Positions 3,562 through 47,800 are shown, numbered from the stretch's first letter. The stretch: DNA of 64,000 nucleotides from Pelomyxa schiedti (GCA_020536535.1 JAHLWZ010000811.1:58389-122388), one strand, 5' to 3'. The notes: generated by a model not told the origin, from the sequence alone. Numbers and translations are program-made.

Positions 3562-5798
3562 ATGAGCACCAAGCCGATGTCGCCCAGGACCCCACAACCG
3601 GGGAATAATGCCAATCCGACTCCAATTCCCTCTGTTGCTTTGTGTCCTCTGACGCCACAGCAACAGCAAAATTTCCTCATGCTTCAGCAACAACAGCAGC
3701 AACGGCTGTTGCAACAACAACTTCTGATGCAACAAGCAAGGCAAAACATGTCTCCGTCATTGCAGCAGCAACAAATGCAGTCCCAAGCCGTGATTTTGCA
3801 GCAGCAGTTGCTCATTCAGCAGCAACAGGCCATGTTGATACAACAACAGCAGCGCCAGCAGCAAAGCCAGGTGCTAAATTGCTACGGAGTGGATAGTGGT
3901 GCCTTCAACAATTTCAGCACCTACGGCAGCACTGCGTCGTCCGCGTCGCCGTTCGGGGTTATGGGAGTGATGCCGCAGATGTCAATATGCAATTCCATCG
4001 GACCGCCGCCCAGTTCCACCTTTCTATCTTCAGTGGGCCCGCCTCCTTCGGTCTCGTCTGTCTATGGCCGACCCACAATGAATTACAGGAGGGCACCGCA
4101 GCTTCAACAAATTGCTGCTACAAATGGGTCCGCACTTATGTCAGTAAGGTAAAATATCATCTTCTATACTTCTCGGTCCCTGAGGCCAGGTAACTTCAAA
4201 AAAAGATTGGTCAACAACGCCTCTCCTGCAACTATTCCCTCTGGCTTGTGTATGCCTTCACCAAGTAACTCTTCGTATGTCCGACCCATTTCCATTTCGT
4301 CTGAGCATGTTCAGGGCTTTCCAACAAAAGTTCTCCCAATTTAGTCAAATGACCCAAATGCGTCAATTGCAGCAACAACAAACTCCAGCAGCGGTAAACA
4401 AAATAGCACCCATCTTCTTTGCTTCTTACTATTATTCTCAGACACCCACCAATACTACTCCTGTTCGTGTTCATTCAACTCCAACTGCTTCAAGTGCACC
4501 AGTATGTTACTGACTTCCTCCAAGAAATCTAATAGTAAAAATCAAGATAGCTATACCTAAAAAAAAGGAACCAGCTAAGCCTGGATATCCTACTACTAGT
4601 AGACCTGCCTCACACCCACCAAATCCCCCCACCAAATCTTCAACACCCACACTAGCTCCTTTGAAGATGTCTGCAAAAGAAGTACTTTGCTCCTCCATTC
4701 AGTGAAAGTACTTACGTATGTAGGTTAAAACTTTCGATTCTGTCTGGTTGAAGTTAATCAAAAAACTGGAAAATACAGTAACAACAGAATTTTGGCCTAT
4801 CTTAACCGAAATAGGAAGGTACTATCCCCCAGTCTTTGGCATTAACATCTAATCCACTGTACCGTTAAGACAGGAGAACCATCAGTTGAATGAACCCATG
4901 TTGGCAAACCTTGAAGACTGTAAAAAAAAAATACTTGCAATTCCGAAATTGGGGACTGTGGGAGCAGCACCCACTGTACTCGATTGTGTATCTAGTTGTA
5001 CAGGTATGCCCTGACAAAAAAATGTGAATATTCATTGGTAAACCAAGAAAAAACTGTTGAGGATTTCCTCAAATTATACAAAGACTTGAGATCGGCTGGC
5101 ACATGGCTGGACGACTCCATTTTTGAATACACAATGGAGCAACTTCACGCCACGCTGTGGCCAAAGTATTGTAGAGAAGTATCTTGCCTCTAATAATTTT
5201 GTTTGTTCTTATTCTTTAAGTATGTAGATGAAGACCATAAACATAACACTAAAATTCGAAGTTTGCCTGAAATAACACCAGCACACCTTGGTGTTGCCCA
5301 AAAATTTTGGTTATTTGACCCAGACAAAGGTGAAATGGTATTTGTGCAAAAACTTCACATAAATATATTCAATGTCTACCTTTAGAGTGCAGACAATTCT
5401 TACGCGAGCGCTATTGAGGGTATGGATATGGCTCTCTTCTCTCAGGAGTAACGAATATTAACCTGCAACACAGCTATCCACCTTATCTCGAAAAAGGATT
5501 CACCTGCGAAAAAAGTAGATTGCCTAGTGAAAGTTGGTCATGAAATTTCCTGTTGCATTCGTGAATATTGGGGAAATGAATACTCTTCTGAAAAATTTTC
5601 TCTGTTTGTCTGTCTTATTCCTACTGCCTCTTACATAATCCAGGGCAGCGGATGACTTTTTACCACTTTTTGCTTTTGTAACAATACGAAGTAACCCTGA
5701 TCATCCCTTCACAGGTAATTTTTGAAATACGACTTTTCACTAACTGCAATATAAAGCAAGTAAATACATGGAAGATTTCCTTCGTGACATTGAACTAA
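3562..5798 (+). CDS. Hypothetical protein: Q-rich and P/S/T-rich N-terminus, unrecognised globular C-terminal region, multi-exon
   Basis: Poly-Q first exon (3562 to ~4148), then co-directional coding fragments (4277-4513, 4996-5193, 5203-5385) separated by intron-like GT..AG segments. The 3' end is approximate. Confidence 0.6.
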
Positions 5799-8235: not shown

Positions 8236-10973
8236 CTATGTAGGGCTGTAGAGTTCGTGCAGTTGTTTGCACTGGGAGAGTACGAAGCGAACTCCAGTGG
8301 AAGTTACGTGCTTGCATCCATTGAGGTCAAGCTTGGCGAGATGTGGAAGCGTGCCACCGGCTATGTAGAGGAGTGCCGTGTCACTTACTCCAGCACAGCC
8401 AAAGAGAGACAAGTCCGTGAGGGTAGTGCAGTTGTTGGCAATGTGCCTCACACCTTCGTCGGTGACTGCTGACTCGTCGAGGTGCAATACAGTGAGAGTA
8501 TTCATTACTCCCGGAAGGTTCTTGACTTGGTCATCACCTATGTGACCACCACACTGCAATTCCAACTTTTGTAATCTGAGGGGGTGAGTTGTAACTGAGA
8601 AAAGATAAAATACCGTGGGCACATAGCAGAGATTGCCTGGAGGGAGTAATCGTCATCCAATTCAAGAGAAAGTGAAGTCAAATTCGAACATACACTTATA
8701 AAGGCCGAGAAATTACTGGGGAGTACTGGCAGGAACCTGGAATGTGTTTAACTTCAATTATCAGGGATGGAGGTGTGTTGTGGTTTACTTGGTGATCCGT
8801 AGTTCTTTTAGATTGGCGAAGGACCGCACAGCCATTTCCAAAGCTCCCTCTGTGAAGGATGAACACATCTCAAGCTTGAGTGATCTTAAGGCGGTACATT
8901 GAACCAAATTTACTAACGTCAAATCCGTCATATTTGAGTTGCACACTAGGTCTAGGTGCCGAAGGTTTTTGCAGAATCTATGCACTATTATCTAGTGTCA
9001 AACATAAAACACGAAAACCTTGTAAGGTGTTTCACAGATGTATCAGTCAACATAGGGCACCTCCTGGAGTGTGTGAGCGTGAGATTGGGAGATGGCAAAT
9101 TACAAATTTAAATGTCTAATCGGAGCTGAGGCTAGTAACAATGTAATAGCGGCATGGGAAACATCTTCACAACGCAATGTCAGCTTTCGCAAATTTTTGC
9201 ACGTTTTGGAGAAAGGAACAATTCCAGCATCAGTGACTTGTTTGCTAGTGGTGATCACAGAAAATTCTTGTAAATCAGTACAACTGCGTGATAGATCTGC
9301 CATGGGGCTGTCTGTTATCCCCTCTAAGAAAGATTAAACAAAAGCCGTCAGTTGAATGTGCCAACCTCCAAAAATTTGTAGGGTTAGTAAATTGAGATGC
9401 AGCTTTGACAACAATGCGAGAGATACATCAGATACGAGATAGAGTGAAATATGTTTCAATCCTTGAAAATAGCCTGCCTTTGCAACCATGGCAAGCTGCA
9501 AGTCCCCAAAAACTTTTAACACTCTCCTAAACATGAGATTGAGCTTTTCACGAAAGGGAACATTCAAGAGAAAGGAAACACCATAGTGATGAATGGCGCG
9601 CAACATCTTTCCACCTGCGACATACACTCTGAACCATAACGCGGTCAGATATAGACAACTGCCAAAATACACGCAGTAACAGTTCAGGAGGAAGTGCCAA
9701 GATTTCAACTGTGGCTTTGGGTATCTTGTGTATGCGTGAGACGAGAGGAAAAGTGCAAAGATGGGAACTCTACCAACAGGGCACTAGAACTCGAGGGAGG
9801 GGATGTTGCTTCTGAAGTATTGCCACCGTGGGAGCCGTTTGAGGCTAGCAATGACTTGTATAGAGACAGTTGTTTCTCCAGGTCGGAAACCCGCTCAAGT
9901 AGCGCTACACATCTAGTGCACTTGTGGTGTGTTGGAAGACAAGTTGAGCTAGGGTACTGGGCGCGAACCTGAAGTACAGGTGTGTGAGAGTTTTTGGGTG
10001 GCGATTGTGGAAGCACAGGGAAAACTTGGTGCTGGGTGAGACCTGGGGAGGGCATAAAAACTCTATGAGAGTTGATGTCGGAATTTTGGACTTGCAAGGG
10101 TGGTGGTGAACTTAAATGGATAGGTGGGAGCCCCTGCTTCTCAGAAGTCTTGCGATGGCGATGCACGTGCTTCGTTATATAAGTGGGTGTATGCATACGG
10201 TGTTGCATTGGAAATTGATTACATTGTGGACTTGTAGAAATTGGTATAGGAGAGCCTGGCAAACCTCTAGGTCCTCGCATGCCCGCATATTCCACTACAC
10301 CAACATGATTGCTCTCCATAGTCGTTACTTGGCCAGTTTGGTCACCTGTGGCACCTGTGATTGTTGGGATCGTTGATTGGAGCGCTAGGGATGTGGATGT
10401 AAATGACATTTGCGGAAATGTTGTCTCTGGCATCAACTTCTCAGAGGGGGTGTCAGAGCCCCCCTCATTGGAGAAGTTAATCTTGCCATCGTCACCGAGA
10501 CTGGAAATCACACTCCCCGGACTGTCTCCTATATCGAGACTACTTGTTGTGCTGCTTCCGGTATCGTTGCCATTGTCCCCAATAGTCTTAAGTACCTCTG
10601 TAGGGGTACTGTTTGAAGTCGAAGTGCTGTTACTGGTTGGGTATTCTGCGCCAATAGAGTTTTCACCAGCATTGTCCACATCGCCCTGGGAGTACATCGA
10701 ATGTGCTCCTCGCAGCAGAGACAAGGAGACGGAGCCTGGGTCTCGTGCTTGCTCGACGGCACTGCCGTTGGTCATTGGAGGCGATAAGGCATCGTGGTTA
10801 CCCAAACGAAGGCCGATTTTGTATCGCTTCCTTTGTCTCTGTTGCGGTAGTTCCTGTCTATCGTCTGTTGCCTGCGGCACGTTACTAGCAACATCTTCCC
10901 TGCCTTTCGCACTCCCAACGGCCTCTTCTTTGCCTTGGTTGTCTGGATCTGGGTCGTTGTCTCCACCGTCCAT
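8236..10973 (-). CDS. F-box/LRR-repeat protein with a long low-complexity N-terminus
   Basis: F-box motif LALPPELLLRVFWQLSISDRVMVQSVCRRWKDVA at ~9600-9705, followed by Cys-containing LRRs (LTDLSLFGCAGVSD, LAKLDLNGCKHVT). Confidence 0.9.
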
Positions 10974-11164: not shown

Positions 11165-14100
11165 TTATGAAGACCCTGAGGGTGCTCTTTTCTCAATGGC
11201 GAGTGAGAGGTCAAACGCCTCCTTCTCAGTCAAGGAGTCCAAGTTGTTGAGGAAGTGCTGTATTGCGTCTATTCGCGTGAAGTTGTAGGGTTTCTGGGAA
11301 GAGTGAGTGTGATAAGGTGGAGCCACAAAGAAGTGTAAGTTTGTGTACCTGTTGGTACTGTTGCATTTCTTGTATGACCGCTGCAACCATCCGGAATTTG
11401 GCAAAATGTACATAGGTGTTTTCAACGGTATCATTGTTTCCTTCCTCTGTAGTGGTATAGTAAGTAAAAAGGCACGAAACATTTTTTTGGGAGGCTCCTC
11501 ACCAATGAAAGTTAGGTCCGTCAAATACACTCCCAAATAAGGAATACAAGGTGGATTTGCCCGGTGCAAGTGCCCGCGGAAATTGGCAAAGCTAGAGGTT
11601 GGAGCTGTTACAGATGCCATTTTTTCCAATGTCTTCGTGGTTTCCTTCACCTACTGTATGTTAAACAAACTGACTTGGAAATCTCTGATATGTACCTCTG
11701 CCCAGGTGAGTTTGAGCCGGGTAATAGCAGAAGAATTCAAGCCAGCAGATATTTCGAAGACAGCGTTGAAGTTATTCAACTTATACAATTCCTGAGAGTA
11801 TTGTTACCAGAAAAATCATAAACTTGGTGCCAACTTCTAGTATTCGAATGAACTTCCGGACGATATTAGCTCTTTTTCTCAGGTCTGGTTCTTTGACAAT
11901 TGTTGCTGTTGTCCAATTGCTTACCTACCAAATGGTGCTTACTTTGAGTTACCAAATTATGAGTCCATACCGCGTTGAAGCGGTGAATCATTGCCAACAA
12001 ATTTGGACTTCTTTTCTCCTTATCTTTTTTGGACCATGATAATGACAACATCTCTTTGGCTTGAATATTCTTCCTAGTTGAGTCCCGAGGAAATGATAGA
12101 AAAGAAACACACCACATATAGCTCAAATTCTTGCATGGACATCTGCCGGGCCATTTCCACAGGGTCAATCTCCTCAAAATTGGCTCTGGATGGAACTATA
12201 GGTGGAGGAGGTTCTGAACTAAACACCCAAGATCGTTGCAGTATAGCACTTCCTAACGCCTAAAAAGGTTGAGCACTGAACGTTCGAACGGATTCATACC
12301 AGTCGCTTATCCAAACCAGGTTTTAGGAGGCCCTGAACTTCTTTGTTAGCCTCCACAAAACGCTTGTATGTTTCTAGTAATGTCGAATCATCCCAGAAAT
12401 CATGCCAGTAATTATCTGTCCAACGACGCAAAACATTGCAAATCCTTTATACAGTTGCAATTGGCCAATTGGAGAGTGTTGAGGGTGAAATGCGAACCTG
12501 AGACGAGTTGTTTTTTTCTTAACAGTGCGTTGCTGTGCGGAGACAGATTGATCCCTAACTTCTTCTTCTGTGGAAGTATTATCATCAAATCTGTGGAGTT
12601 TGTTAGAAAACAAAATGGAAGTAAGTTTCGTACGCCTTAATGACCATTCCCAATACAGTGTTAGCGTCAGTATAGCTTCTATATGTAAGAAGGAAGATAT
12701 CCAAATATTGTGCTGATTGAAAGGATTTGTATACAAAAAAAAAAAAAAAAAAAAAAGTACATTCAACATTCTTGGCAAACAGGCGAGCAACAAGCTTTTC
12801 TATCGTTCCGCCCTTAATTTCTTTTTCTGGGTTATTTGGGTTCTTTTTATCTATGGAATATATTATCCCCTCTTCTGACTAATAGAAGTGAACAAGATTT
12901 ATGGTTACAAGCGTGAAACATACATAGTCTGAAGTGGTATTCAGGGCAGCTTCTAGTTGCCCTTGAAGCGTCTTGCACATTTTCTTTTTTGCAAAATTAG
13001 GATAGAGTTAAAGAGAGGGGGGGGCAATACTTGAAGAACTTCCTTTCCTGTTTTGAGTTTGGTAACCTCTTCTGTGAGACTCAAAAAAGTTTTCTTTCAA
13101 TGAATTATTTAGGAAAGAAAGAAGTTGGGAGTGCTAACAATGGCGAGCATCTGATACTGGATATGGTTTCTTTCCATACGCATAATACAATTTTCGGCCG
13201 CCGTATCAAATGCTTCAGTTGAAATTCTCAATTCATTAAAGTGTAGAAGTTGGTCCAATCCAGGTGTGCCAGAAAGACTATAAGGAATGAATAAGCGAGA
13301 GCCCTGCTAGAAGAGGTGCTACGCTACTTCTTTTTTGTCAAATCTAGTTGCTCTCGCAGAATTTTTAACTCTGGCTTCAGTTTTGCATTCTCCGCCAATA
13401 CAACTGGTGATGCAGAGTGTGATCCTACAAATAGTTTAGTTTCCAATACGTTTTCAGACAAAAATCGAATTAGATACCACGTCTCTGTGTGAGAAATGAT
13501 CTCTGCCAAGAACCTGAACTAGTAAGTGAGCCTTGCTCCGCTTCTTCTATGCTACCCCGTCTCTGAGTTCCAGTTAGAGGAGAGTGAAGTTTAGTTATTA
13601 AATAGATTACAGGAGGCATTGATTGGCGGAATTCGCGAGTCGGACGATTGCTCACTGTGGTGGAGCTGCTTGATACAAGTTAAAAAAATTTAAGAGTAGA
13701 AAGTGAAATGAAACCTCGTTGCTGGAGGTGGGATAAAGTCGGAGGGAGGAGGAATATCAGCTGGTGGTGGTGGGGGAATATCTAACAAAAAAAAAAAAAA
13801 AAAAAGGTTAAGAGTAAACACTACAAACTTGGCTGCATACCCACGTAAGGTGAGGATGGGGCAACAGGTGGAGGAACTGGATCAGTGAAAGGTGGTGGAG
13901 GCGGCAGTGAGTCTGTCACCGGGGGAGGTGGTAATACATTGTCCAACACAAGCGGGGGTGGTGGCGGGGCAGTGAACGGCAGCGGCGGCGGCGAACCGTA
14001 AAGCAAAGAGGCCGGGATGTCGCCGGGCGGGGGAGGCGGCGGCAGCTCCGCGGGCAGCGGCGGGTGCGTGGGGGTGCGAGGGGTCGACAGCGGCGACAGC

Positions 14101-32400: not shown

Positions 32401-35400
32401 ATGCTGAGTGCCGCTGGGAAGTGGGGCAAGCGGCAACAACAGCCGCTGTCCGCACCGAAAAACCCCGACGTAAATCCCTCGAAACGATCGCGGACGCGCG
32501 CCACGCCCAGCCCCAGCAGCGCAGCGCCGGCCGAGGCCACTGCAATCCCGCGTGCAACCAAAGCGCCAAGGACGACGTCGTCCACGACTGCCAAGGCCCT
32601 TCCGAAACCACTTCCCATAACGAGGGCAACCGAGGAGGACGCCACTGTGGGTGCCAACGAAATGACCTCACGCACGCCCATAATAGTCCCGCGCGCACCT
32701 AAACCACCTACTCCAAGGACAGCCATTGCCGCCAAGGCCCCCTCGAAACCACACACCACCCCAACTTCGAATCTAAGAAATCCAACGAGAGCAACCAATG
32801 TGGAGGAGCACGAAGCACAAGACGTCGCCGTTAATGACAGCGAAGGAATGAGCACTCATCCGAATGAAGGTCTCACGTCAACCACAAAATCGTCACCAGT
32901 CCTGGCACCACAACCAAAAAAGCCAACTGCAGAGAACGCAAAGGCAAAACCACCGCCGCCAACAAAGATGAACCCAAAAACAAAAAAGGCCACTGACGTG
33001 TCTCCACCTACATCCACAAAACTTACAAAGAACAAGGGGCTTACGCAAGAAAATACAAAAAAGAGCGGCCAAAGTAAAAGCACTAATTGTGGTGAAATGT
33101 TCACTCCATTGCAAGAAAGAAGGGGTAACATAACAACAAAAACAAAAACAAAAACAACAGCAACAGCAACCAGTGAACACTCCAGCAAATCGGCAGCGGC
33201 AACAGAAGGAAAAATAAAAGCAAAGGCAGCACCAAGAGTGGCAGCATCTAGTGTTGGAACACCTCCTGTGATTGAAAGTCCAAGTGATGTGTGCTGTTTG
33301 GATGGTGCCCTTTCTGTCCCAATTGGTGCCACCTGCTTGATCCCTGTTTCAAAAGAAGTGAAGCTCTCAAAAAGTGAGTGTGAAGAGGTATTTGCGTGGT
33401 ACATTGGAGAAGATGAGTCCATCCCTGATGATATCTTCACCAAGGTCTTACACTCAAACAGACTGTATCTGAACCATATGCTGATATTCACTTTAGGCCA
33501 CTCTGTCTTTGAACCCTAATCCCCTTTGGACAAAAAAATGTTCAGAAGAGAGAGCAAAAGCGGCAGAAGAGAAAAAAACAGCGGCAGAAGAGAGAAAAAA
33601 AGCGGCAGAAGAGAGGAAAAAAGCGGCAGAAGAGAGGAAAAAAGCGGCAGAAGAGAGAGCAAAAAGGGAAGCTGCCGAAAAAACCCTACTATATCCACCT
33701 GCCGAGAGTGACGCTATCATTCCGGATTATAGTGTAGTTGCACGCTACTACGAGACCGGAGTTGGGATGCAAGCAAGTCTCGCCACATCTGATTCTGCCC
33801 AAACATTGCGGGAGCTGAAAACTACAGTCGCTGCGGTAAGGCAAGCCAGATGGAGTCAAGATAGTGATAAGCCTTTCATTGTGCTGGACGGATCATCGGG
33901 AATGGGCAAGACACAGCTTGCATTTGCCCTGGATGAAGACGTCATGTTTGCCTTGCCCCCACCCTTCTTTTTTTTTTTTTTTTTTTTTTTTTGCTACAGC
34001 TGACCAAACGGAAAGATTCATTGCGTACGACGCTCCCAACGAGCAGTCAATATACCATTGCTTTAAGCACATGTCACTCTCCTTCCGGCAATGCATAGAA
34101 CTGGATTCGGCACCTATGTCATCCAAACCTGTGGATATGAATTGCCATTTCTTGTCTGTTCTGTGGTGCTGGACAACTGCATGGTTGGACTGGAATCTTG
34201 CGCAACAATGGGATCCAACAACAGGGTCACGAAGGAAGATCAAACCACCCACTTATATATCAGCGGATGGAACAGAAAAATCTTATCCAAATCGACTGCC
34301 GTATAGCGTTCTCTTGACAGATATTGATCACAAAATCACAGAGCCAATGTCTAATTATGAATTTTCAAAGAAGTGGTCTTTGTTGACCAGGAAGCCACTT
34401 ATTTTCATGGATGAAATACCACAACAGGACGAAAAGCAAATGGCCTTCATGAGAAACCTGTGCCGTGCTTTGAGCTTGACTGTTATACTCTCTGGCACGA
34501 ACTCTCATGCCATCGAGATGCTCTGCTGTGGCACGGCACCTTGTGACTTGCCACCGTATCTCTGGTGTTATGTCTTTCCCAGGCCCTCGAGACCAACAGT
34601 GGAGTCGTTAAAGTCATCCTGGGTCAGGGATTACGATGCTATCCTGGCCAAATGCAACAAAATAGACCCTGCGTTTGGCAAGTTCATTGATGAGTGCTCT
34701 CTCATGAACAGAGGATTCTTTGCTGTGAAAATGTTACAGTTCCTCAAATCGACGATGTTTCCCAACAACATCGAGTCAACAGCCCTCTTCCAGCCGCCGA
34801 AAGTTCTAGAAAGCTTGTTTGAACACTTGCACGACGAAGCCCTGGCCCAAAAAAGATCTATTGTTGGAACGCCAATGGGACTAGCTGGACAGGTTCTCCT
34901 TTATTTTTCACGCATGAAAGGGCCCACTGAAGTTATATCCCAGCACTACGCCCACCTCTTCATCGAAAGGTACAGTTCAGATCAAGCACAAACAAAAGCA
35001 AAACCAGTGTATAACGAGGAAGTATTCCAGTTCTGGCGTCATCAGACGATACTCGTGGAACAGTCCTACCACGACAGTGCAATCCATGAAGAACAACTCC
35101 AGAATTCCAACTTTTGGGCATGCTTCCCCAAGATCACCAAAGAGCCACTCCTCTTTCTGTCCCTCTGCTGGGACACCAAAAACCACACAGGCTTCTTGGA
35201 TGAAAACTTGCAGCAAATCCCTCTTTGTGAGGCTTGGGACAACAAGAAACTGCACAGGCAGTTCACCAGGAAAGTGGAAGAGGAAGTTCTGAGTGAAGAA
35301 ATGAGTGATGGAGGAGTTCTTGAGCAGTATGCTGGCGTTGCGATTGCCGCCGCATCGCACCGAGGGGGTCTTGGGGGACAAACAATTCTCTCCTTTTTGA

Positions 35401-36275
35401 CTGCTCTGGCCTATCAGTTGCATGGAACTGAATTCTCTCATGAATTTGAGACTCAGGCAGCGAATCTTTGTCTAATCCCCTCGGCCATGCAAGGCATTAA
35501 CATTCCGTTCCTTTCCCCCCCAGATGACCCATTTCCCCAACATTTTACGGAAATTCCAGGCATCAATGTGGCCAATTTTGAGAGGACTGCTGATAAAACC
35601 ATGATGATAGATTTGAAAGGTGGTGGTGGCATCCTCGTCGAGGCCAAGGACCGTGATCAGTTTGACAGCACCCATGTGGAGGAGGTGTTGCACAAACTCA
35701 GCACCCATGCAACCCCAGAACAGCAACTTTCCCTGGTATTCCTCAGGGAGATGAATAAGCGCCCGTACCGTCTGCACGCCGCCGTCGACAAAATTTGGCA
35801 AGTAAGATGGCAGCCCGTGATGCTGGCAGGCACAAAACAGATGAAGTGCAGTGTCTTCCATCCCAAATACACTGAGAAATGTGGATTTAGGAGGAACAAG
35901 AAAAGTGGAGCCAAGGTTAAATCCTGCACCACGAGTGACGCTGAGACTGACACTGATACTGACTCTGTGACCACCACAGCGAAAGTTGACACGGAACCGA
36001 ACTTTGATGTTAATGGGCTGTGCATTATCTTCGAGGTTGGTGATGTCAAGCCACCACGTTCTCCATTTATGAAACAAGACAGTGCTGAGACCGATACCGA
36101 TACCGATACCGATACCGATACCGATACCGATACCGATACCGATACCGAGACAGAGACCCACAAAAACCCAAAACACACCAATCATTCCTGGAGGGAAAAT
36201 AACTCGGTCATAGAGCATTGGAGTCGCACTTTTTATTTTTTGGTATATTCGGATCTTGCCATGTATACCGCCTGA
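32401..36275 (+). CDS. Crinkler (CR)-like protein: low-complexity N-terminus, coiled-coil repeat, P-loop NTPase and PD-(D/E)XK restriction-endonuclease-fold domain
   Basis: Predicted introns at 33445-33496 and 33946-34015. Walker A PFIVLDGSSGMGKTQLAF, Walker B LIFMDE, CRN-type FMRNLCRALSLTVILSGTN, and nuclease-like DGGVLEQ...IDL..ILVEAKD. Confidence 0.78.
33543..33663 (+). repeat. 21-bp coding tandem repeat (about 5.5 copies) encoding (AAEERKK)n
   Basis: The unit AAAGCGGCAGAAGAGAGGAAA and close variants are repeated directly. Confidence 0.95.
36089..36148 (+). repeat. (ACCGAT)n hexanucleotide microsatellite encoding (TD)n
   Basis: About 9-10 perfect copies near the 3' end of the Crinkler-like ORF. 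Confidence 0.95.
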
Positions 36276-36370
36276 GAGGCTGGAAAGACCACGACTTGGC
36301 CAAAATTTTCGAAAATCAATTTTCAAATTGTCAGTGTCCCAATTATTGGCCGAGCCCTGTTCGAGTAATA

Positions 36371-39300
36371 ATGGCCGACACGTACTATTCGGCCGACGGC
36401 GAAGATGATTGCGACCACGACGACATGGACGCCGACGGTGGGGCCGCCCAAGTCATCTACTCCACGTCTTCCACCTACATCGACGAGGACGCCAGCACAA
36501 CCACGGACGGCCCCCCGCCCGGCGACGGCGACGACGACGCCGTGGTAGACGCGTGCTCGGGTGTGTGCTTCGGCCGAAGCCAAGGCAGGCGCCCCTCGTC
36601 GTCGACCAATGCAACGGCGCCTGCAACGTTCGCGCCAACCTCGGCACCGCTGCCGTCGTTCACGTCGACCCCAACCTCAGCTGCTGCTGCTACCCAGGCG
36701 ACCAAGTTGGCCGACCCGTACCTTGGGGCCTACGACGCCGCCGCCGCCGGCGATTCCAGCAATTGCAGACCCAAATGTAATGCCACCACCAGCACCAGCA
36801 CCAGCACCAGCACCAGCACCAGCAGCAGCAGCAGCAGCAGCACCGATTCCACGAACGCTGTTAGCGCATGTGGTTCTGGCTCTGGCTCTGGCTCTTGTCG
36901 TGGCACCAACACGAGAGCGACCATCAATGAAAGTGGCTATATTGACGGAGCTGGTAGCGGCGGTGGCTCGGGGGAGGCATATTCACAGGGGGGAGCTTCT
37001 AGTAGCCTCAGGCAACAGTTGGCCTTGAGGAGGGCCACTGGCGTGACGGTGCAGGTGGTGCAGACGTTGCCTGGTGAAAACCAGCAGCAGCAAGAACAAC
37101 AACAACAACAACAGCAGCAGCAGAAGATACAGAAGCAAATGCAGGAGCAGCAGTTGGCTGTCGGGTCACCACCTCTGTCGTGTGTTACACAGGGACTGCT
37201 ATTGTCTCGCCCTCTGAGTGTTTCCTCTACTTGGTCCAATCTATCATTAGGTATATTGTTTGTTTGTTCTGTGAAGGAATTTGACCTTCTTTTCCTCTCC
37301 TAGGCAAAAATGGGTTTCCTATTGACTGGTGATATATCCTTTTCCGTGCTAGTTCTCTTCCCTAATAATGTTTCTAAAGGAATGAAAGATTTATTGAGAT
37401 AATGAGCTTACCAGAAACAACTCTACAGCAGAGACTTGAGGTTGTTCCCAACTTTTCAAGTGTTTGCTTATCACTGCACAGAAATTCCAGTTGTTAACTT
37501 CCTTTAACAAAAATTTTCTGAGTATTGCTGAGTCTTTTGGGAGGATTATTATTAGTGAGGCGTTCATTCCAGAACAGTATAGGCATGCTCCTAACGTACT
37601 CTGCTTCCCATCTAATTGTGAGTAGAACAATACAACCTATTTCACTTGGTGGCCAGGCTGGAGGTAGGTTCGATACTTTTCCGTCCTCACTTACCTCACC
37701 TTAGGTGAAAAGTATATGTACCATGGTAAGACCAGGTGGGAACAAAATAAAATGTAACTAATAAATCAAGGCATACTTTTTAAATTTGCTACCGACTGGC
37801 TCAAAATTTATGGTGGTGACAAAAATGCTATGAAAGCTGGAGGACATGATCTGAAGGGTTTGATGAGGTTTCATTTTACTCAATGCTTAACTTTACTTTT
37901 TATCAAATATCTAAAGAAATGAAGTCACATCTCTACAGATATTACTCTTGCCCTGGCATTCATACCCCACTGATGGCCCTTATAGGTAACTAAGTTCTCA
38001 GAACTTGTTCTGGATTTAATAAATGGAAAGACTTTCGGGGGTTCCGTCTTGTGGCTATGACAGTGTTACCAATAAATAAGACTACTCTTATATATGGCTC
38101 TGCCAACGGTATGTCCATGATTGCTTTTCTGTGTCACTAAAAGTCCAAGCTGGGCGGCAAGTGTACTGCAAAATATCAAGTACTTTATTTTGCATATCGT
38201 TTTCCATGTAACAGAGGAAATGCAGAATACAACCAAGTTATGGAACATGCTGGAAAGCGATTAAATCTTAAAGGTCATTGGTGTGGCTTTGTTGGGCCAG
38301 ACTCGAAATTCTTGTACAGTCCTTGTGATATTGAAGGCCATTTGGTATGTTTTTATTTCTTGACACAAAATTTATTTCCAACAGGGTTTGGATAACCGAT
38401 TTTATGTATGTGATTTTGCACGGACTTTTCCACCCACAGCTGGGAAAGATGTAAATAAATCATTTTTGTATAAATTGTTCAGGTTTTCCATAACTCAAAC
38501 TTTGTAATGCATTTCAACCTTCTTCAAGGCCCGAATTTGTCTCCACTTGGAAAAAACCATTGTGCAGTGATGCTTTCAGTAAAATTTGTGCCCAAAATGG
38601 GGCAGAACATAACCCAGAGGTCTTAAATCCCAAGGAAAGCTACCTTTCTAAAATTCCCAACAGATTGTTGAAGCAACTGACTTCTTGTTAAATACAACAA
38701 TACCTCGTTTCGCTGCAACCCTTGAGAGAAGTTACCAACAGACACAAAATATCCCCCAGGTATTTTTCCCTAGCAACAGATCCTCTAGATCCTCTCTTAC
38801 AGACTCAGATCACAGAAACAATTCACCGTGAAGGGATAAATGTAAGATACCTTGGTCGATTGCTTTCTTTTTTGACTGAGAAGTCCCTCAGACTTGCTCT
38901 TATTCACGAGATGATTGCGCGTGTGGCAAAAAACAGACTCTATGAACTGCTTCGAGTAACAATGAGGGTATGGAACAAGTACAGTATACATTCTCACAAA
39001 ACATCAGGAAAGAAAAACACTGGAAGAAGATGCACATAGAGAAGTTATCATAATTTTTTTGAACTCTGTCATTGGCATCACCCCTGCAAATCCGGCATTC
39101 ATATTTTGGAGACCTCACCTTATGGTTGGTTTCTTCAATTGATTTTTGCGCTCAACTTGTCATTAGAAGGAGTTGGAGCAACATTTTGAGCAAAGTCATG
39201 AAGCACCTGAATTTTCTGCTGGCTATATCAAACTTAGGGAGGTGTTGAATATGTATGACCTCTTTGTTCGCATCCAAGTACTCACAGGAGTACATCTGAC

Positions 39301-42300
39301 TTCTGGGGCCGTTTCTGAGCTAAAGAATTCTACATCTTTTACTTTTGTGTCAACAGATTTGAAACGGGTATCCTTTCTGAGTGTCTTTTTTTCCCCTCCA
39401 CTAAATGACATAAGGTGTCACCTTGTGTTAAGTATATGAACGTAATCAGGTCTCCCTACCCTCCAAAAAAAGAAAAAAAAAAAAAACTGAACCCTGTCCA
39501 TAAAGTATGGCTGAAGCCAATGCTCTTCATATTCAGTCCATGCGTTCATATGAAAAGTCTTGTCAATCTTGTGAGAGAATGTTCCACCTTGCAATGACAA
39601 AATTTGAGCAGGTAATAAGTCCCGATTCCGGTGTCTTTTTCAAATAAATTTAGGCAATTCAAGCCACACCTGACAACATTAGCATCCTCAACAACTATGG
39701 AGATGTTCTTGTTGAACATGCTATTCTTGTTTGCCAAAGTGTATCTGTGAAAGATTATATCGAGAAGTACTTCTTCAAACTACTTAGCTTGCTCTACCCA
39801 ATACTAGGTCCTTGGAAAGCTACACACTTGCCAATAACTTCACTAAGCTGTTAGAACTTGGGAATACGGTGGCGGCTCTGAACCCTTTGTGGGAAGAGCA
39901 AGTTTTACTCCTGTTTTAGGCACAGTTTTTTCATTCTTTCCAGGACTCCCTCCTAGCGGCTGCGTCAAAGTGTTTTGATATGGCACTCAAACTTGCTAAT
40001 TCTGATAAACCTGCTTCCGCCCCGATTCACAAAGCGTGGGGTGATGTGCTTGTCAAGAGGGCAAGGAAGAACAACAGTACATCACTTTACACAGAAGCGG
40101 GTAACTTAACATTATCACAATTGAGAAATCACGATCTTCAGGAATACATTATAAGTTAGCCTTCGAGTTTGAGCACCCTCAGTCAGCCCTAAAACTTGGA
40201 GATATCAGTACAGCGTGCTTGTACGAAATTACCAACAATTGTCCTGCAACAACTTTCAACTCCCTTGTTGTATTTAGACCCGCTCTGATTACGGCAGTAC
40301 GCCACAGTCAATTAGTGCTACTACTCATCTTGTTTTGTCACAGGAAACACTGCAATACTTTTCTTTGCTCCACAAAATTCAAATACTTATTCTGCAACAT
40401 TGCTCTCTAGACACACTGATTCTTACCACCATTCACCAGAATGCTACTAACATCTTTCACTTAGACCTTTCACAAACTGCCAATGTACTTTAGAGTCTCC
40501 TGTCTCTTACTGATTCTTTTTAGATTTCTCAACTGGATTTAATTGAAGTACTACGTGCCTGTTCTTGCCTCACCGTTCTCAATCTCGCAGAGTGTCCTGG
40601 TGTGGATGATACTGTAGTTAGTGCTATAAGTGTTCACTGTCCCTACTTGACGTTTCTTTCACTTGGTTTGTAACGAATCTACGATTTCTTTATTTACCCT
40701 TGCGAAGAAAAAACTTCGATTAATTCATTACAACCACTGGCTTCAACTTGTCAGAAGCTCCAAACAATCATCTTGTCTCATCTTTCAGCCCCTCTTCCCT
40801 CTGCACTTGCACCAGGTATTTTCCTATTTCCTTTTTACTGAATATTGATCATCCAACAGCTGCCACGGCATTGGATGTCAACCACACTAAACTCACTAAA
40901 ATGGATCTCCTGCTGTTCCTCAAGACTCATTTGTTTCTCAAGAAGTTGGATCTATCACATAATTCCAATGTTGATGACCATGTGATCGCACAGCTTACTT
41001 CCAGCTGTACTTCTCTGACATCACTTGACATAAGTGACTGCCATGTAACTGATGCAGCCATAAGGTTGTGAACCAAATCGGAAACACATCTAACCCAGTT
41101 AGGTCTCTTTCATCCTGCACAGACCTTAACACACTTATTTTTCAGTCAACGGTCGGGCTGTCTGAATGCAATACCTTTTTCTCTAAATGCGGACCCAAGT
41201 TTACAAATCTTGAGCTAGTGTGTCCGTTTATGGATGTTCCAACACTAGAAGCATTGTCTTCTTCTTGTGGCTTGCTACAAAAACTCAAGTTGTCTTTTGA
41301 TGTGGTCTGCACTTTGCAATGCTCTTTCGTGCACCATTAATCCTTGCATAGAAAAGTGATAATGCTTTACGTGACTTATTTTGTGCTTGTAAATCCTTGC
41401 AATCCCTTTCAGTTCTGAATTTTATATCTGATTGGTACGTTCAAAATTAGGAGAATGTGAGCTAATTTTGTTAGTTCCTTTCAAGCTGCGTGTTCTCTTA
41501 ACCTTCGTCATCTGGCCGTTCCCCGTTGCAGACATTTGTCTGACCACTCTTTTAAGGCAGTTACCAAGTACTTCCTCTCCTCAGTTTATCTAGTATTCAT
41601 AGGGTATAGTTGTAAGGAATTGACATTTCTTGACCTAAGTGAAACCAACATTGGCTCTAATGTTCTCGCCTCAATTGCCTTTGCATGCGTCAAACTGCAA
41701 AATCTCAATTTGAGTAGATGCAAACTTATCACTGTATTCCCTAACAAACTGTCTTTTTTGATAATTTTCCCTTCTAGGATGAGGCAATTACCGCCATCTC
41801 GAATTCACTTCATGACCTGAGAATGTTGAACCTCAGTTTTTGTCTACTGATTTCTGAAATTGGGGTGTGCTTTTCTATCATGGTCCTTTTTTTTTTTACC
41901 TATTCCCAGGTGTTAAACAAGTGTATTTTCTTAGAAGAGTTGGATTTAGAGTCTTGTGAAAATGTATCTGATCTCTCCATTCAGGTTGTTCAAAAAATGA
42001 AATTATACCTGAATAAATGGAGCTGACTGTACTACTTCAGGCCCTTTCACACTTACCATGGTTGAGTTCTATGAATATCAAGGACTGCGGCTATGTTGGA
42101 GATTTAGGAGCAATTGCTGTTATAGAAAACTCACTTTTTTTGAAGGTTGGTAGAAAACAGTAATGTCGGTAACTCCCTCTAGGCTTTGACTTTGGGTAAA
42201 AATAAAATTTCCGACACAGTGTTGGAAAAACTTGTTAACAAACGAACTGACATTACAATCACGTCCCCTTAGTATTTTCCCTGCTCCTTTTATGGTCAGC

Positions 42301-44802
42301 TCACAAAAAAAGTCTAAACAAGGTCAAAGGCCCACCAACTGAAACAGCAATAAAAAGCTTGGTGCGAGATTTGCAGCAAATAAATGAGAATCCACTTCCC
42401 TATATATCAGCACACCCACTGGCTTCTGACATGTTTATTTGGCATGTCAATTTGCTGGGGACAGGTTGCCTTCCTTGAAAGGTCCCCTTGTAATATTTAC
42501 CTTATTTTTAGAAGGGACTCCGTATGCAACTGGATTGTTTCACATAGAACTACAGTTTCCACCTGACTATCCCAATTCCTCTCCAAGTGCACAGCTACTA
42601 GTCTCCCTGCCCCATCCACATGTTCACAATAACAGGTAAAAAGTTCAAGGCTATTCAGTAAACTTATTCCCAAAATAGGATCTGCTTGGATATTTTGAGG
42701 TAATGTGTTTCAACTGTTGCCTCCCTACTTAAGACTTCCAGTGACTACCAAGACTATTTTCATCACGTAAAAACCAAATCTGGTCACCAAGTAACAACTG
42801 GTTGGACAAGTGCATATTCTGTTCAATCTATACTTTTGCAAATGCAAAGTAAATGGGTTTTTTGTGCCAGACATTCTGATTCATTCCCTCTTCTTTCACA
42901 TAGCATTTTTGATTGAACTCGAAGATGATGAGGGACAAGGTCCACCAGCTCAGTTTTTGAAAAGTATTCCTGCAGCCATCAAGGCTTCTTTGGAGTTTAC
43001 ATGGTTACCACTGCCCTAATTCTACCTATCGTTGACTTCAAGACAAGCCCCAAATGCCCACACAAACCAGGAAGTCCTTGGCCTCCACTGCCGGCAACCA
43101 CAATCGCTGCAAAGCGACCTGTAAGATTTTCCAACCAGACAACAACTTACGCACTTTAGACTACATTTGAAGACCAAATCATGCAAGAACTTCGCTGTTA
43201 CCATTCCCGCGTTTCCTTTGTTGAAGATTGCATTGGAGTCGGATTGCAAGTCACTTATTACCCGTTTGTTTTATCAGTTGCTTGGAATAGAAAAGTCTCA
43301 CTGTACTTTTCCCCTAAAAACAGTCCCCGAATGGGTGCCCCATTCCCTATCAAGTCCATTGTGACACCTTTTGAATTTTTGAGCAAGTCCGCGTTCTACG
43401 GGGGACATAAACTGTCAATTCTCAAAGAACCCCTTACTCACTGGATACCTTTATGCATGGCCCACAATGTCTTATTAATTTCTATTAATAACTCAACATA
43501 GATATCAATGAGGAACACGGGAAAATTGCGCGACAACTTATCAGAGAATCCTTAAGCTTAATTACACTTGGGGTACCTAATCGGTTCTCACCAGAAATGG
43601 CTCTAAAGGTGATACCATCGATTCTCTCCTCCATGGTAGTTAACATGATGAACGGCACCACACATGGTAGGCTGGGCATCCAAACTTCCCTAATTCTTCT
43701 CTCCAGCGTCCATAAAAGCACTGGAAGGTTACTGTAGCTTTCACCGACTCATGTTGATGTTTTTATTTGATCACCCTGAAATAGGAGGTTGAGAGGTTGG
43801 TACATCTCACTGCTGATTCCTCAATGTCCTGTAGTTTGGGCTGATTCCACTATCAAAAATTTTATTCAGTTCCCAGATTACCGAATGAAGAAAGTTTGAC
43901 TGACCCCACAGGAGTTTTAACTATTTAACCCTACTTTTAGTATGTCCCAAATCTCGGTGAGTTCATACCGTTATTACTCATTTCAGCATATACCTGGTCC
44001 CACATTGCACAATCCCTTTTGGAGGAAACACTGGACAGAAATGTGCTGTGGCTCTTAAGACGAGAACCCTGTATGGCTTTGATTTTCTGACAGTAACTTA
44101 TGCCCTTTCTTTTAAAAAGCACTGGCCAATCCCTATGCAATGGTAGATGTCCCAACGCGTTTGGAGAAAACTTTCAAAGGCTCATGTGTTTCTTTGCGGC
44201 TTCTTATGTTTCATGTGTATTTCATTGAGACAATTGGGCACCCAAAGAACATGGGTTTTGCTCATATTGCCAGCCAATACGACACTATGCATGGGAAACC
44301 ACCCATGGCTGTAAAGGAAGACTTGCAAAAGCAAACCATGGCCATTTTGGCTGTAGACAATTGGAGGTAATTGCCCCCAGTTTGTGTCAATTAACTCTGT
44401 TTGCAGTGGTGCTTTTTCCCGGTTGCAAATTGCATACCCAGGGGATGTCAATTTTGATGCCTGGTTGAGGCAAAGCATAGTACACTCTGCCTCCAAGGGA
44501 TACCACAAGTATGTTCCGCTTTCTGTTCTTTTCTCCCTCACCTCATTTTTTTTGTTGACTTCCGCAGCCCCTGTGCATTTGTACCCGCCACTCCACCAAG
44601 TCCTCCGGTGACCCACAATTCTTATTTGCAGCAACCCACCGCCACGGCGGCGGCGCCAACGCAATCACCTCCTACACACTCTACTTCTACCACTACACCA
44701 GCAAAGAGCCCAGCCTCAGCAGACCGTCATAGAAACCTCTCTACCTCTGAAGAGTGGCAAACCATTCCCAGAAAACCCAAAAAGAAGAACCACAAGCATT
44801 AA
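36371..44802 (+). CDS. Large multidomain protein: CLU (clustered-mitochondria/TIF31-like) core, TPR-like helices, LRRs, ubiquitin-conjugating (E2) domain and an uncharacterised C-terminal domain
   Basis: CLU motifs: GQAGGEKY, GILFKFA, AMKAGGHDLKG, PLMALIDFRGFRLVA, DIEGHLGLDNRFYVCDFARTFPP, LCSDAFS, HREGINVRYLG. LRRs at ~40400-42260. E2 motifs: LVRDLQQ, WHVNL, EGTPYATGLFHIELQFPPDYP, HPHVHNNRICLDIL, GWTSAYSVQSILLQMQ. The LRR-E2 join depends on a predicted intron at 42263-42312. Confidence 0.75.
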
Positions 44803-44852
44803 AAAAATTTTTATTTTTACTGGTTTGTTGTCTGCTTCCTCACACTCTGAAC

Positions 44853-47800
44853 TCAGTCCATCAATCCACCACTCACAACCACATTTGCAGTAGCAGGTGC
44901 AGTTGTGGTTGTAGTAGGTTCCAGAATTGTTGGCTGGGGTGTCTGTTTTTCATCCAGCTTCTCACCTTGCTTTTCCTCTAGCTTCTCGTCGGTATCCACG
45001 GTACTCACGGGTGCGTATGTTGTCCCTTGTTGTGTTCTCTTCCGCCACCAGAGGAACCCCAGTACACAACCGGCACTAACAGCAGCTACTCCACATACAA
45101 CCCCAAATACAATTCCGGCAATAGTTCCATCAGAGAGCTGTTTGGGGAAATCGAAATTAATAAAATGAGTCGAGTTAGGCCGGTACTTACCCCGTTATCT
45201 TCTACGGGTTGAATGGGCATTGCTGATTTGATGAATGTGGTGGTGATATAGCCCTCTGAACTTCCCGAACCTTGGACAAATACGTACCAGTACTGCGGTT
45301 TGCCTTTCACTGCAAGGGATGTGATGTTCAGATGAGCGTGCCCACAGGTATGATCAGGGGTGAAGTAACTGCATCCAGTACCGGCATCATCGTCGCACCC
45401 GGAAAAGACTTGAATGTCAGTGTCAAGCAGATTGTCATCAGAGCAGGTAGAAATGTCGATGTACTGGTTACTGCCAGACACTCGATACCACAAACCTGCA
45501 CAAGTGAACACTGGAAGCAGTTTTGTTCTAAGGTGTAACCTTTGTAAGTGGTAGAACCACTGCAATCACCAGAGGATGCATCGGAGTAATAAGTAAAATC
45601 CCCCACTGTCTGTATATCACTCACAATCTCGTAAGGATTGGAACAGAGAGAATTAGATGGCGCAGTGACTTCATTCAGTCAGGCTAGGAAATGGAAGAAA
45701 GAGGGATGAGACCTTCTAAGACATTTAAGCTGAAGATTCCTGTTGTGTCACCAAATCCAGTAACAAATATGTAGTACAGAGCACCAGAATCAGTGTCGAA
45801 CTCAAGCTTCGATGCAAAACCACACGAAGACATGTCGTCATTCCAGCTCCCACATACAGTAGCTGGACACCCAGAGTATACTACAATCATAGTGTCAAAG
45901 TCAGTGTAAGGCCCACAGGTGTCCACACGTAACTTAGATCCTGTCCCGACAACAGAGTACCACACTCCTAGTATCAAGTTAGTAAGAGTTTTGGCAACTA
46001 TAATAATATACACCTTGCTTATTCTGTTGTAGACATGTATCTGAAGAATGAATGGTGCTTAAGGTGTCACCAGTGCCTATAAAAGGTAGGGATGAAATAG
46101 CCAAAGCATGGTCACATGTGCTGTGGTTCACTGGTTGAGCTAAAATACTACGTAAAAAGAAGGTCATTGTGCTACACAGCTGGCATACAATTGTAAAACT
46201 GAATGTGGAAGAAGCCAGTGCTTACACCCACGGGTGTGGCCACAAATATCAAATATTGACGACCTTTTTGTGCAGCCCAAGTTACTTGGGCCTTATTACC
46301 ACAAACAGTGGTGCTAAGAAAACTTAAAGGCGGATTGAATAGAGGAAATAGAGCTACCTTTGTGCTGTACAAGTATATAAAGTGCACGAGGTGTAAACTT
46401 CTATAGTTACAACTGCGCTAGTGGTGTTGGTGCATGTTGTTGCTGTAACTTGTACATTCTCCTCAGGTACATATTGGTACCACCTTCCTGAGTAGATCGG
46501 TCAAAGAATTACCGAATTGAAATCACTACCTTTGCGCTGCGATGATGTGCTGGAGCAATCACCATAGGAATAGGCTGACGTAGTGGTAGTCGCCGAGTAG
46601 TCACCAGGAAGGGTAATGCTTTTGGCAAACCAACATTGGTCGTTTGAGACAGTTTGTTCTATGTTTGTGAAATATTAAAACCACCTTATGAAACGAAAAG
46701 GAGAAAAATACGATTTGCAACAGTGAGAGTAAAGTTTACTCCAGTCAAGTCATTGTGATATCCTGAAACAGCAATCCAATACTCAGTTCCAGATGTCGTG
46801 TTAAATGAAACCTACTGTCATTGAGGAAAGATTTATTACGTTCTAAAAAACTAACTGAAGAGTAGAACCCACAGTAGTCATCGTTGTAACGAATGCATCC
46901 AGTTTCGTTGTGGTTTTCACAATTGTCATAGACTTCAATCATTGTATCATGTCCCTGCCACTTTCAACCATGGACTTGATTTAAATTAAACTTACTGCGC
47001 TGTTCTCATAGCAAGTCGTTGCAATAAGAGTATTGCCATTCCCTTCAACAACAAACCACAGTGCTTTTGCGGAGGGTGAGAGGGAGAAAAAGGTATGGGT
47101 TGAGGTACATCTCTTGTTCGCATTCAAACATGAACTATAACTGGCTGGAACAGCATAAGTTGAATCTGAATATATCCAAGGTATCCTTGGAACCTCCATA
47201 GCATATGAACAATCAGAATGAGGTTTCACAGCAACTTCAGTGAGTAAGAAAAAAAAAAGAAAGAAAAGATAAAGAATGTAACCAGAATCAACAGTAAGCA
47301 CAAAACTTCCTCGACTGCCTGAATAACCAGTAACAAAAATATAATAAGTTATGGATGCTGAAGATTCCCACGTGATCTGAGAACCCCGGTCACAGTAGTC
47401 GTCATTCTAGAACCATTAAAGAAAGTTTTATTCCAGGGAGGCAACTCTTCCCACACAGCCAGAGGCTACACCATTGCTACAGTTACTGTAGATCTCAATA
47501 AGAGTATCATAATTCACTGCATCGTCACATGTGTTCGCCAAAAATGTCATGTCTTTTCCAGTGATTTTGTACCACATGCCTATTACAATATTATTGGAAT
47601 GTCACTGTAAGAAGATATACCTCCAAGAGAGGAATAAGAGCAAGCACTATAACAGGACGGAAGGCCAACAGTGGAACCACTTGTTACATAAGGAAGTTGG
47701 GCATTATTAATTGTCACGGCACCAGAGCAATTGGAGTTTGCATAAACAACATCTGCACAAGATTGTAGGTGCAAAGCAGAGTGTAAATGAAGTAACCTAC

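Follow-up and report, generated by a model that had tools for sequence, protein, structure and literature searches.

We analysed a stretch of 64,000 nucleotides (nt) from Pelomyxa schiedti (GCA_020536535.1, JAHLWZ010000811.1:58389-122388; hereafter the window, with positions counted from its first letter). P. schiedti is an anaerobic amoeba of the Archamoebae with reduced mitochondria. One gene is readable on the + strand at 36371-44802, with about 47 exons and about 2,084 codons in a homology-aided splicing model. A sequence-only reading of this DNA had proposed that CLU, helical, leucine-rich repeat (LRR) and ubiquitin-conjugating enzyme (E2) segments run in the same direction and can be spliced into one frame, and all four were indeed found to be collinear on the + strand. 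From the N- to the C-terminus, the order is a low-complexity N-terminus, CLU, eIF3_p135, tetratricopeptide repeat (TPR)-like helices, Cys-type LRRs, the ubiquitin-conjugating (UBC, E2) domain, a CxxCxH motif and a domain of about 330 residues. Our results support a protein, conserved in Amoebozoa, whose CLU-TPR-LRR scaffold carries a Rad6-like E2 together with a fused ubiquitin ligase (E3) module of the UBR type, and structural models suggest that it may have ligase activity. The gene contains the following features:

36371-37261, + strand: putative first exon, with an ATG at 36371 and about 295 low-complexity codons; the 3' boundary is at 37250 or 37261, and start and boundary are taken from the open frame, the composition and the splicing models.
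37440-38504, + strand: CLU domain in about nine short exons; PF13236 is matched in five exon pieces at profile positions 21-60, 66-107, 121-160, 163-204 and 204-222, collinear.
38692-39036, + strand: CLU-central (eIF3_p135) domain, from PF12807 (E 3.9e-10) and tblastn.
39167-40156, + strand: helical TPR-like region, from tblastn to the TPR-bearing relative P0151 (query 455-624); boundaries near 39368-39505 are uncertain.
40344-42271, + strand: Cys-containing LRRs (FBXL/AMN1-like) in about 12 exons, with LRR_6, LRR_1 and LRR_4 matches at 40524-42023.
42272-42312, + strand: proposed intron at the junction of LRR and E2, 41 nt, GTATTT..AAG, in frame and chosen by both splicing models; the alternative donor at 42263 gives 50 nt.
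42313-43003, + strand: UBC (E2) domain in five exons, with PF00179 (UQ_con) at 42430-42636 (E 6.9e-10), an insert after the active site, and HPH in place of HPN.
42679-42699, + strand: micro-exon of 21 nt encoding ICLDIL with the catalytic cysteine; both flanking introns are present in an RNA contig.
43002-43093, + strand: CxxCxH..PWP motif (C-P-K-C-P-H-K-P-G-S-P-W-P) directly after the E2; its first Cys codon is split, TG from C, by the RNA-verified intron 43004-43047.
43160-44508, + strand: C-terminal domain in eight exons, a RING-like beta subdomain (ELRCYH.., THWIPL, INEEH) followed by a bundle of about 12 helices; positions 2-332 of profile A1 are matched in order.
44568-44802, + strand: last exon, a Pro/Thr/Ser-rich low-complexity tail with a basic stretch at its end, then TAA; RNA contigs cover 44568-44763.

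Splicing was described by two models, one trained on the RNA-verified introns of the gene and the other aided by homology. In the latter, the 46 introns have a median of 43.5 nt, and the uncertain places are 37262-37460, 39368-39505 and 41985-42040. For Pfam searches on this intron-dense gene, stop-free or exon pieces were translated one by one, and the CLU, eIF3_p135, LRR and UQ_con matches fall in gene order. The window DNA is present in one public study, in which two runs are probably the source of the assembly itself. RNA contigs from two low-depth single-cell runs, aligned over 39000-44900, contain 16 spliced introns of 39-60 nt, all GT-AG except for a single GC-AG intron (43455-43501), a type that accounts for 1.59% of the P. 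schiedti introns in the genome paper (PMC8887013). A seventeenth intron (41435-41474) appears in the contigs as a loose end, and all 17 lie within the LRR and the E2/C-terminal parts. One RNA contig of 1,065 nt starts in the E2 (about 42579), passes five further introns and enters the C-terminal domain, which places the E2 and the C-terminal region on one message. Two details validate the splicing, namely the ICLDIL micro-exon and the split TG-C codon of the CxxCxH motif.

The region after the E2 (about 400 residues, including the 330-residue domain) had been described as looking conserved, and an exhaustive HMMER search with the 81-residue exon 44122-44364 bore this out, with 157 proteins at E <= 1e-3. 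The top match (P0001) was discarded, as this protein is repetitive, aligns in 18 short stretches and has unrelated Pfam domains. Three long matches of this search have CLU and UBC in one open reading frame (ORF). P0151 (1841 aa) comes from a Trinity transcript of Soliformovum irregulare, with CLU at 108-322, eIF3_p135, TPR, LRR at 1010-1247, UQ_con at 1289-1421, the 330-residue domain and a zf-CCCH. P0068 is an uninterrupted genomic ORF of 7,104 nt (2,367 codons), which has the same domain order and lies on a 16.8-kb contig (L010) with ordinary neighbours. P0150 (KAH3759897.1) is an annotated P. schiedti paralog, again with this domain order; since its exons are 100% identical to sequence on contig C650 (31392-40473) of the window's own assembly, it is not independent of the window gene. 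Its GenBank name, 'Histidine kinase A', is unsupported by any of its detected domains. In tblastn, P0151, P0068 and P0150 match the window in collinear order from 37479 onwards, all three as far as 44349 at least and P0151 and P0150 as far as about 44510; the group of matches of P0151 from the E2 to the C-terminal part reaches E 1.3e-55. The single ORFs of the relatives, this collinearity and the sequence of the window itself make it very probable that the locus is one fused gene, as originally proposed.

At the junction itself, a 50-nt GT-AG intron had been placed at 42263-42312. An in-frame intron does fit here, and the part that changes is its donor, which is more likely to lie at 42272 and would give an intron within the length range of the verified ones. 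With a matrix built from the 16 RNA-verified introns, the donor GTATTT at 42272 scores 3.8 and GTCCCC at 42263 scores -0.1, so that the latter is possible yet the poorer match; both keep the frame. The acceptor at 42312 scores 3.7. Verified introns score 2.9-8.6 at donors and 4.2-10.4 at acceptors, which puts the junction sites at the low end, with the acceptor below 4.2. Across the donor at 42272, the frame reads ..TDITITSPY/LNKVKG.., and the TAG at 42270-42272 is split by this donor. The peptides ..TDITIT and LNKVKGPPTETAIKSLVRDL, which had been quoted for the two sides, are both present as quoted. No RNA contig was found over 42152-42348, so the junction in the window gene rests on homology and sequence logic.

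These data also bear on a rival reading in which two genes lie side by side: the CLU-TPR-LRR gene would stop at the TAG at 42270-42272, the E2 and the C-terminal domain would be encoded by a gene of their own, and the fusion would be reduced to a chance in-frame GT..AG pair. Such an arrangement would be in keeping with the missing RNA contig and with splice sites scoring in the lower part of the verified range, as well as with the presence in the same genome of stand-alone genes for E2 plus domain (C790, C770, C1126) and of CLU genes that end differently (C664 with Ham1). Moreover, the long ORF upstream of the gene (33864-36275) stops 95 nt before the ATG at 36371; intergenic spacers can thus be very short, about 100 nt, which weakens the argument that there is no intergenic gap before the E2. 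However, merely 41 nt separate the two parts, and the E2 frame is open only from 42251, with its first in-frame Met in ..ASDMFIW... As had been claimed, no ATG precedes the UBC fold, and a separate E2 gene would therefore need a borrowed upstream exon. The terminal LRR exon (42183-42271, ALTLGKNKISDTVLEKLVNKRTD..) aligns with the repeat that P0151 and P0150 have directly before their E2, and the linker leading to E2 helix 1 has about 21 residues in the window gene and about 25 in these relatives; all three relatives carry both halves in one ORF. We therefore consider two separate genes very unlikely.

The putative first exon is rich in G+C (60-69% over 36300-37200) and would encode runs of Ser, Thr, Ala, Gly and Gln, compared with about 40% G+C in the remaining gene; the paralog P0150 likewise has about 300 residues N-terminal to its CLU domain. 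The CLU segment aligns collinearly with P0151, P0068 and P0150 at 32-42% identity in tblastn, and the CLU domain is followed by CLU-central (eIF3_p135), as in the CLU family; CLU matches of the relatives range from E 1e-48 to 1e-61. A CLU_N domain was not detected in the window gene. In the TPR-like region, the window pieces themselves gave no Pfam match, and TPR_17 is matched in P0151 at the place homologous to 39167-40156. An A-rich run (..AAAAAAAGAAAAAAAAAAAAAAC..) at 39458-39494 falls inside a probable long intron of about 91-138 nt, which is unusual for this gene; as a repeat, this run was skipped in the comparison with the reads. The LRRs are of the type found in FBXL receptors (LRR_6, LRR_At5g56370, LRR_FBXL15), and four of their introns are RNA-verified (41435-41474, 41568-41609, 41734-41777 and 41865-41909). 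At position 40474 the window has A and both contigs from DNA runs have G, which could be an allele or an error. Pfam searches found no F-box in the window pieces, and neither an F-box nor another hidden domain in the CLU-type relatives. The canonical CLU architecture, which ends after the TPRs, is not followed, as the LRRs, the E2 and the ligase-like module come after them.

Three window exons match the family E2 profile A2, and the introns at 42636-42678, 42700-42741 and 42849-42903 within the E2 are RNA-verified. By sequence, the E2 is nearest to Rad6/Ubc2/UBE2A (E 2.6e-21). Structures were modelled on the Soliformovum ortholog, which is 26-45% identical to the window gene. The structure of the ortholog E2 gives Z 17.6-18.2 to the Rad6 group at 32-36% identity and about 17 to UbcH5 at 30%, a small margin. 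The CxxCxH motif that follows is strongly conserved, with C161 nearly invariant and H166 invariant in alignment A3. The asparagine of HPN is replaced in the window gene, which reads HPH (..LPHPHVHNN..), and the same is seen in P0151, P0068 and P0150. This substitution, shared by the window gene and its CLU-type relatives, would be expected if the UBC were weak or inactive and served as a ubiquitin- or E3-binding module like UEV. However, the window gene retains the catalytic cysteine, whose column is at least 90% Cys in the E2 alignment A2, other E2 family members keep HPN, and the surrounding UBC motifs are intact. A weak or inactive UBC thus seems very improbable to us.

We then examined the 330-residue domain, in which all 7 internal introns, together with the following intron (44509-44567), are RNA-verified. 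Alignment A1 comprises 47 members of the domain, with 28-54% identity to the first, and the ortholog domain modelled from it has a predicted local distance difference test score (pLDDT) of 95.9 and a predicted template modelling score (pTM) of 0.92. A Foldseek search of the PDB with this model returned the E3 module of UBR4 (8B5W, E 2.6e-5) as well as 8BTL, the same module with UBE2A, and the next, unrelated match had E 0.12. In VIA-align, the model reaches Z 21.3 to UBR4 8B5W over 301 of 346 residues (model 7-330 on UBR4 4833-5183) and Z 11.2 to the RING and cap-helical region of yeast Ubr1 (7MEX_A, residues 1218-1641); the next chain, unrelated, has Z 4.7. In UBR4, the module consists of a hemiRING with one zinc, packed against a bundle of 11 helices, the UZI; it recruits UBE2A/UBE2B through the hemiRING (PMC10873205). 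The ortholog model has the same two parts, with a RING-like subdomain on a helix bundle. Judged by this model, the C-terminal domain shares its fold with the UBR4 hemiRING-UZI E3 module and with the RING and cap-helical module of Ubr1, which strengthens the earlier description of the protein as 'E2-E3 hybrid-like'. The Cys and His residues conserved in the family are those of CxxCxH, of CxH (ELRCYH in the window) and the His of INEEH, with the His of THW conserved in part; in alignment A3 the conserved positions are C161, H166, C198, H200 and H265. A UBR box was not found, as neither the window pieces nor the full-length relatives gave a zf-UBR match.

The ortholog E2, linker and domain were also modelled together (AlphaFold2, 529 residues; pLDDT 88, pTM 0.79), with pLDDT 92-94 in the CxxCxH stretch. 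This model aligns with 8V0D, the crystal structure of an engineered UbcH5B-MIB1 RING3 fusion, over 195 of 211 residues (model 4-260) with a root-mean-square deviation of 2.6 A, and chains containing only an E2 align over 137-146 residues of the same model. From the extent of the alignment to 8V0D, the RING-like subdomain is predicted to be placed on the E2 in the usual E2-RING pose in the ortholog.

In view of these results, we think it probable, with real room for doubt, that the window gene encodes a single-chain E2-E3 ubiquitin ligase of about 2,080 residues, aimed by its LRR and CLU modules. The ubiquitin-activating enzyme (E1) would charge the cysteine in ICLDIL; the RING-like subdomain would dock in cis on this E2 in the usual E2-RING pose and could, together with the helical bundle, promote the discharge of ubiquitin. 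The LRR solenoid, and perhaps the TPRs, may hold the substrate, and the CLU part might bring the enzyme to mRNA-protein particles, ribosomes or organelle surfaces, with all of which CLU proteins are known to associate. Retention of the junction intron would lead to a stop at the TAG at 42270, and so to a CLU-LRR protein without the ligase part.

Several observations speak against such a ligase. Besides the HPH substitution and the missing RNA contig at the junction, Pfam gave nothing meaningful for the exon pieces after the E2, nor for the 47 homologous domains (none UBR-related at E <= 5), and a PDB sequence profile search with the domain returned chance matches only (E 0.7), with no link to UBR4. 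The zinc ligand pattern of UBR4, CxxC...HxxC, is not conserved as such in the family alignments, and no conserved motif corresponding to the Gly-Gly element of the UBR4 UZI was found in the family. The structural models are those of the ortholog and not of the window protein. When the ortholog E2 and C-terminal domain were modelled as two chains, the score was 0.00, with controls not run, so that this result is evidence neither way. Finally, the F-box inside the RING-like region of many relatives could mean that the module works with a Skp1-cullin-F-box (SCF) ligase and not alone.

In another reading, the gene is single and the C-terminal domain is a scaffold or substrate-binding part with a UBR fold; the E2 would then work with outside ligases, for instance SCF where relatives carry an F-box. 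Among the relatives, the domain mostly comes directly after the F-box, the usual place of a substrate receptor; the sequence differences from the UBR families, with the UBR4 zinc ligands and the Gly-Gly element not conserved, point the same way, and the two-chain docking gave no verdict. On the other hand, the fold match spans both the RING-like subdomain and the helical bundle, a Rad6-like E2 is present in the same chain in the full-length relatives examined, the AlphaFold2 model sets the RING-like part on the E2 as in the E2-RING fusion crystal, and one Cys and two His of the RING-like subdomain are nearly invariant. We regard a mere scaffold role as unlikely, and keep the single-chain E2-E3 ligase as the favoured interpretation.

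Looking beyond the CLU-type proteins, most relatives consist of an E2, the CxxCxH motif, a linker with an F-box, which thus lies between CxxCxH and CxH, and the domain; extra modules among them are VWA, S1, TerD, LRR or CCCH. They occur in Amoebozoa (Arcella, Pellita, Planopodium, Pyxidicula) and stramenopiles (Seminavis, Platysulcus), and clusters of the ESM Atlas with the same fold and a UBC domain (template modelling score 0.89-0.91) are labelled mostly Ascomycota and Rotifera. The presence of a hemiRING-UZI fold behind a Rad6-like E2 in many protist proteins amounts to a natural 'Rosetta stone' fusion, and is an independent argument that the module and Rad6-type E2s act as a pair.

In P. 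schiedti, at least 9 loci carry the C-terminal domain, four of them with an E2 just upstream. Apart from the window, there are at least eight such UBR4-like domain loci including the paralog on C650, among them C127:64643-66005, C770:37552-38396, C644:6100-6513, C790:135392-136733, C1126:8357-9512, C1615:484-1287 and C841:45612-45860. Besides the C650 paralog, the family E2 lies just upstream of the domain in C770, C790 and C1126; the distance of 1.5 kb between E2 and domain in C790 is what an F-box insert would give. At least 17 loci carry a CLU domain, and CLU and the C-terminal domain are combined only in the window gene and on C650. CLU matches are spread over about 17 loci of the 52-Mb genome (for example C816:37115-37726, C890:53865-54338 and C664:9272-10091), and the CLU domain is single-copy in most eukaryotes. 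On C664, the CLU match at 9272-10091 is followed 2.4 kb downstream on the same strand by a Ham1p_like (ITPase/Ham1-like) match at 12469-12996. The number of CLU loci suggests that P. schiedti has a large family of CLU-scaffold proteins that vary at their C-terminal ends.

Taken more broadly, and only tentatively, these proteins may form an unnamed, widespread class of eukaryotic ligases that join a Rad6-like E2 covalently to a UBR-type RING-like/UZI module. The amoebal branch would have this unit behind a CLU-TPR-LRR scaffold, with a CCCH finger in relatives, and could write ubiquitin directly on targets associated with messenger ribonucleoproteins, ribosomes or organelles without a separate E2 or E3; intron retention could switch the ligase off. 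The hemiRING-UZI has been known only since 2024, from a single giant human ligase, UBR4. The fused unit of about 530 residues could be a compact, tractable system for the activation of an E2 by the module, and its attachment to CLU, TPR and LRR parts suggests that ubiquitination is directly linked to CLU biology (mRNA, ribosomes, mitochondria-related organelles). Annotation would also gain, as Pfam has no family for the 330-residue domain and GenBank lists the paralog as 'Histidine kinase A'.

At the 3' end of the gene, position 44607 is G in the window and T in one RNA contig (depth 3.9), again a possible allele or error. Pieces of ORFs on the minus strand lie at 45086-46387, starting about 300 nt past the stop of the gene, as for a convergent neighbour gene.

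The sequence-only reading knew of no characterised protein with this architecture, and in the library of papers searched none was found that describes either the CLU, LRR and E2 architecture or an E2 fused to a hemiRING-UZI module. Among known systems, UBR4 is the closest in structure (8B5W, 8BTL): the whole-domain fold is shared, with a RING-like beta subdomain and then about 11-12 helices, and the partner of UBR4 is an E2 of the Rad6/UBE2A type, as is the E2 fused in the window protein. UBR4, however, recruits its E2 as a free protein, and in the window protein E2 and module form one chain; identity is 12-13%, with no detectable sequence similarity, and in place of CxxC...HxxC the family has CxxCxH, CxH and a His, with no conserved Gly-Gly element found and without a UBR box. 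UBR4 is a 574-kDa N-recognin, whereas the window protein has about 2,000 residues with CLU and LRR parts. Yeast Ubr1 (7MEX, in complex with Ubc2) is the second-best structural match, and Ubc2/Rad6 is among the best matches of the E2; it differs from the window protein in its complete RING, which has two zinc sites, in its UBR box for N-degrons and in having its E2 as a separate protein.

UBE2O and BIRC6 are E2/E3 hybrids, large single chains that combine a UBC domain, substrate recognition and ligase function. The window protein resembles them in being a large single chain with a UBC domain; they are not known to have a RING-like module beside the UBC, or CLU or LRR parts, and a BIRC6 arm was a weak, unrelated match in the structural comparison (Z 2.1). 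Unlike the F-box/LRR (FBXL) receptors, the window protein has no F-box that could be found N-terminal to its Cys-type LRRs. The order of CLU, CLU-central (eIF3_p135) and TPR is that of CluA, Clu1/TIF31, CLUH and Dictyostelium CldA/CldB; canonical CLU proteins, however, end after the TPRs, and none has been described with LRR, E2 or ligase modules. Amoebozoa do reuse the CLU domain in other architectures, as in Dictyostelium CldA (with SH2) and CldB (PMC2906285). The nearest relatives in composition are the proteins built of a UBC, mostly an F-box and the domain (Arcella A0A6B2KY89, Seminavis CAB9502388.1, Pyxidicula and Pellita transcripts), which are 33-54% identical to the Soliformovum ortholog and share with the window protein the E2 subtype, the CxxCxH motif and the 330-residue domain. 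These mostly carry the F-box insert and have VWA, S1, TerD or nothing at the N-terminus, whereas CLU-TPR-LRR is found in only one subgroup of the family, so far from Amoebozoa.

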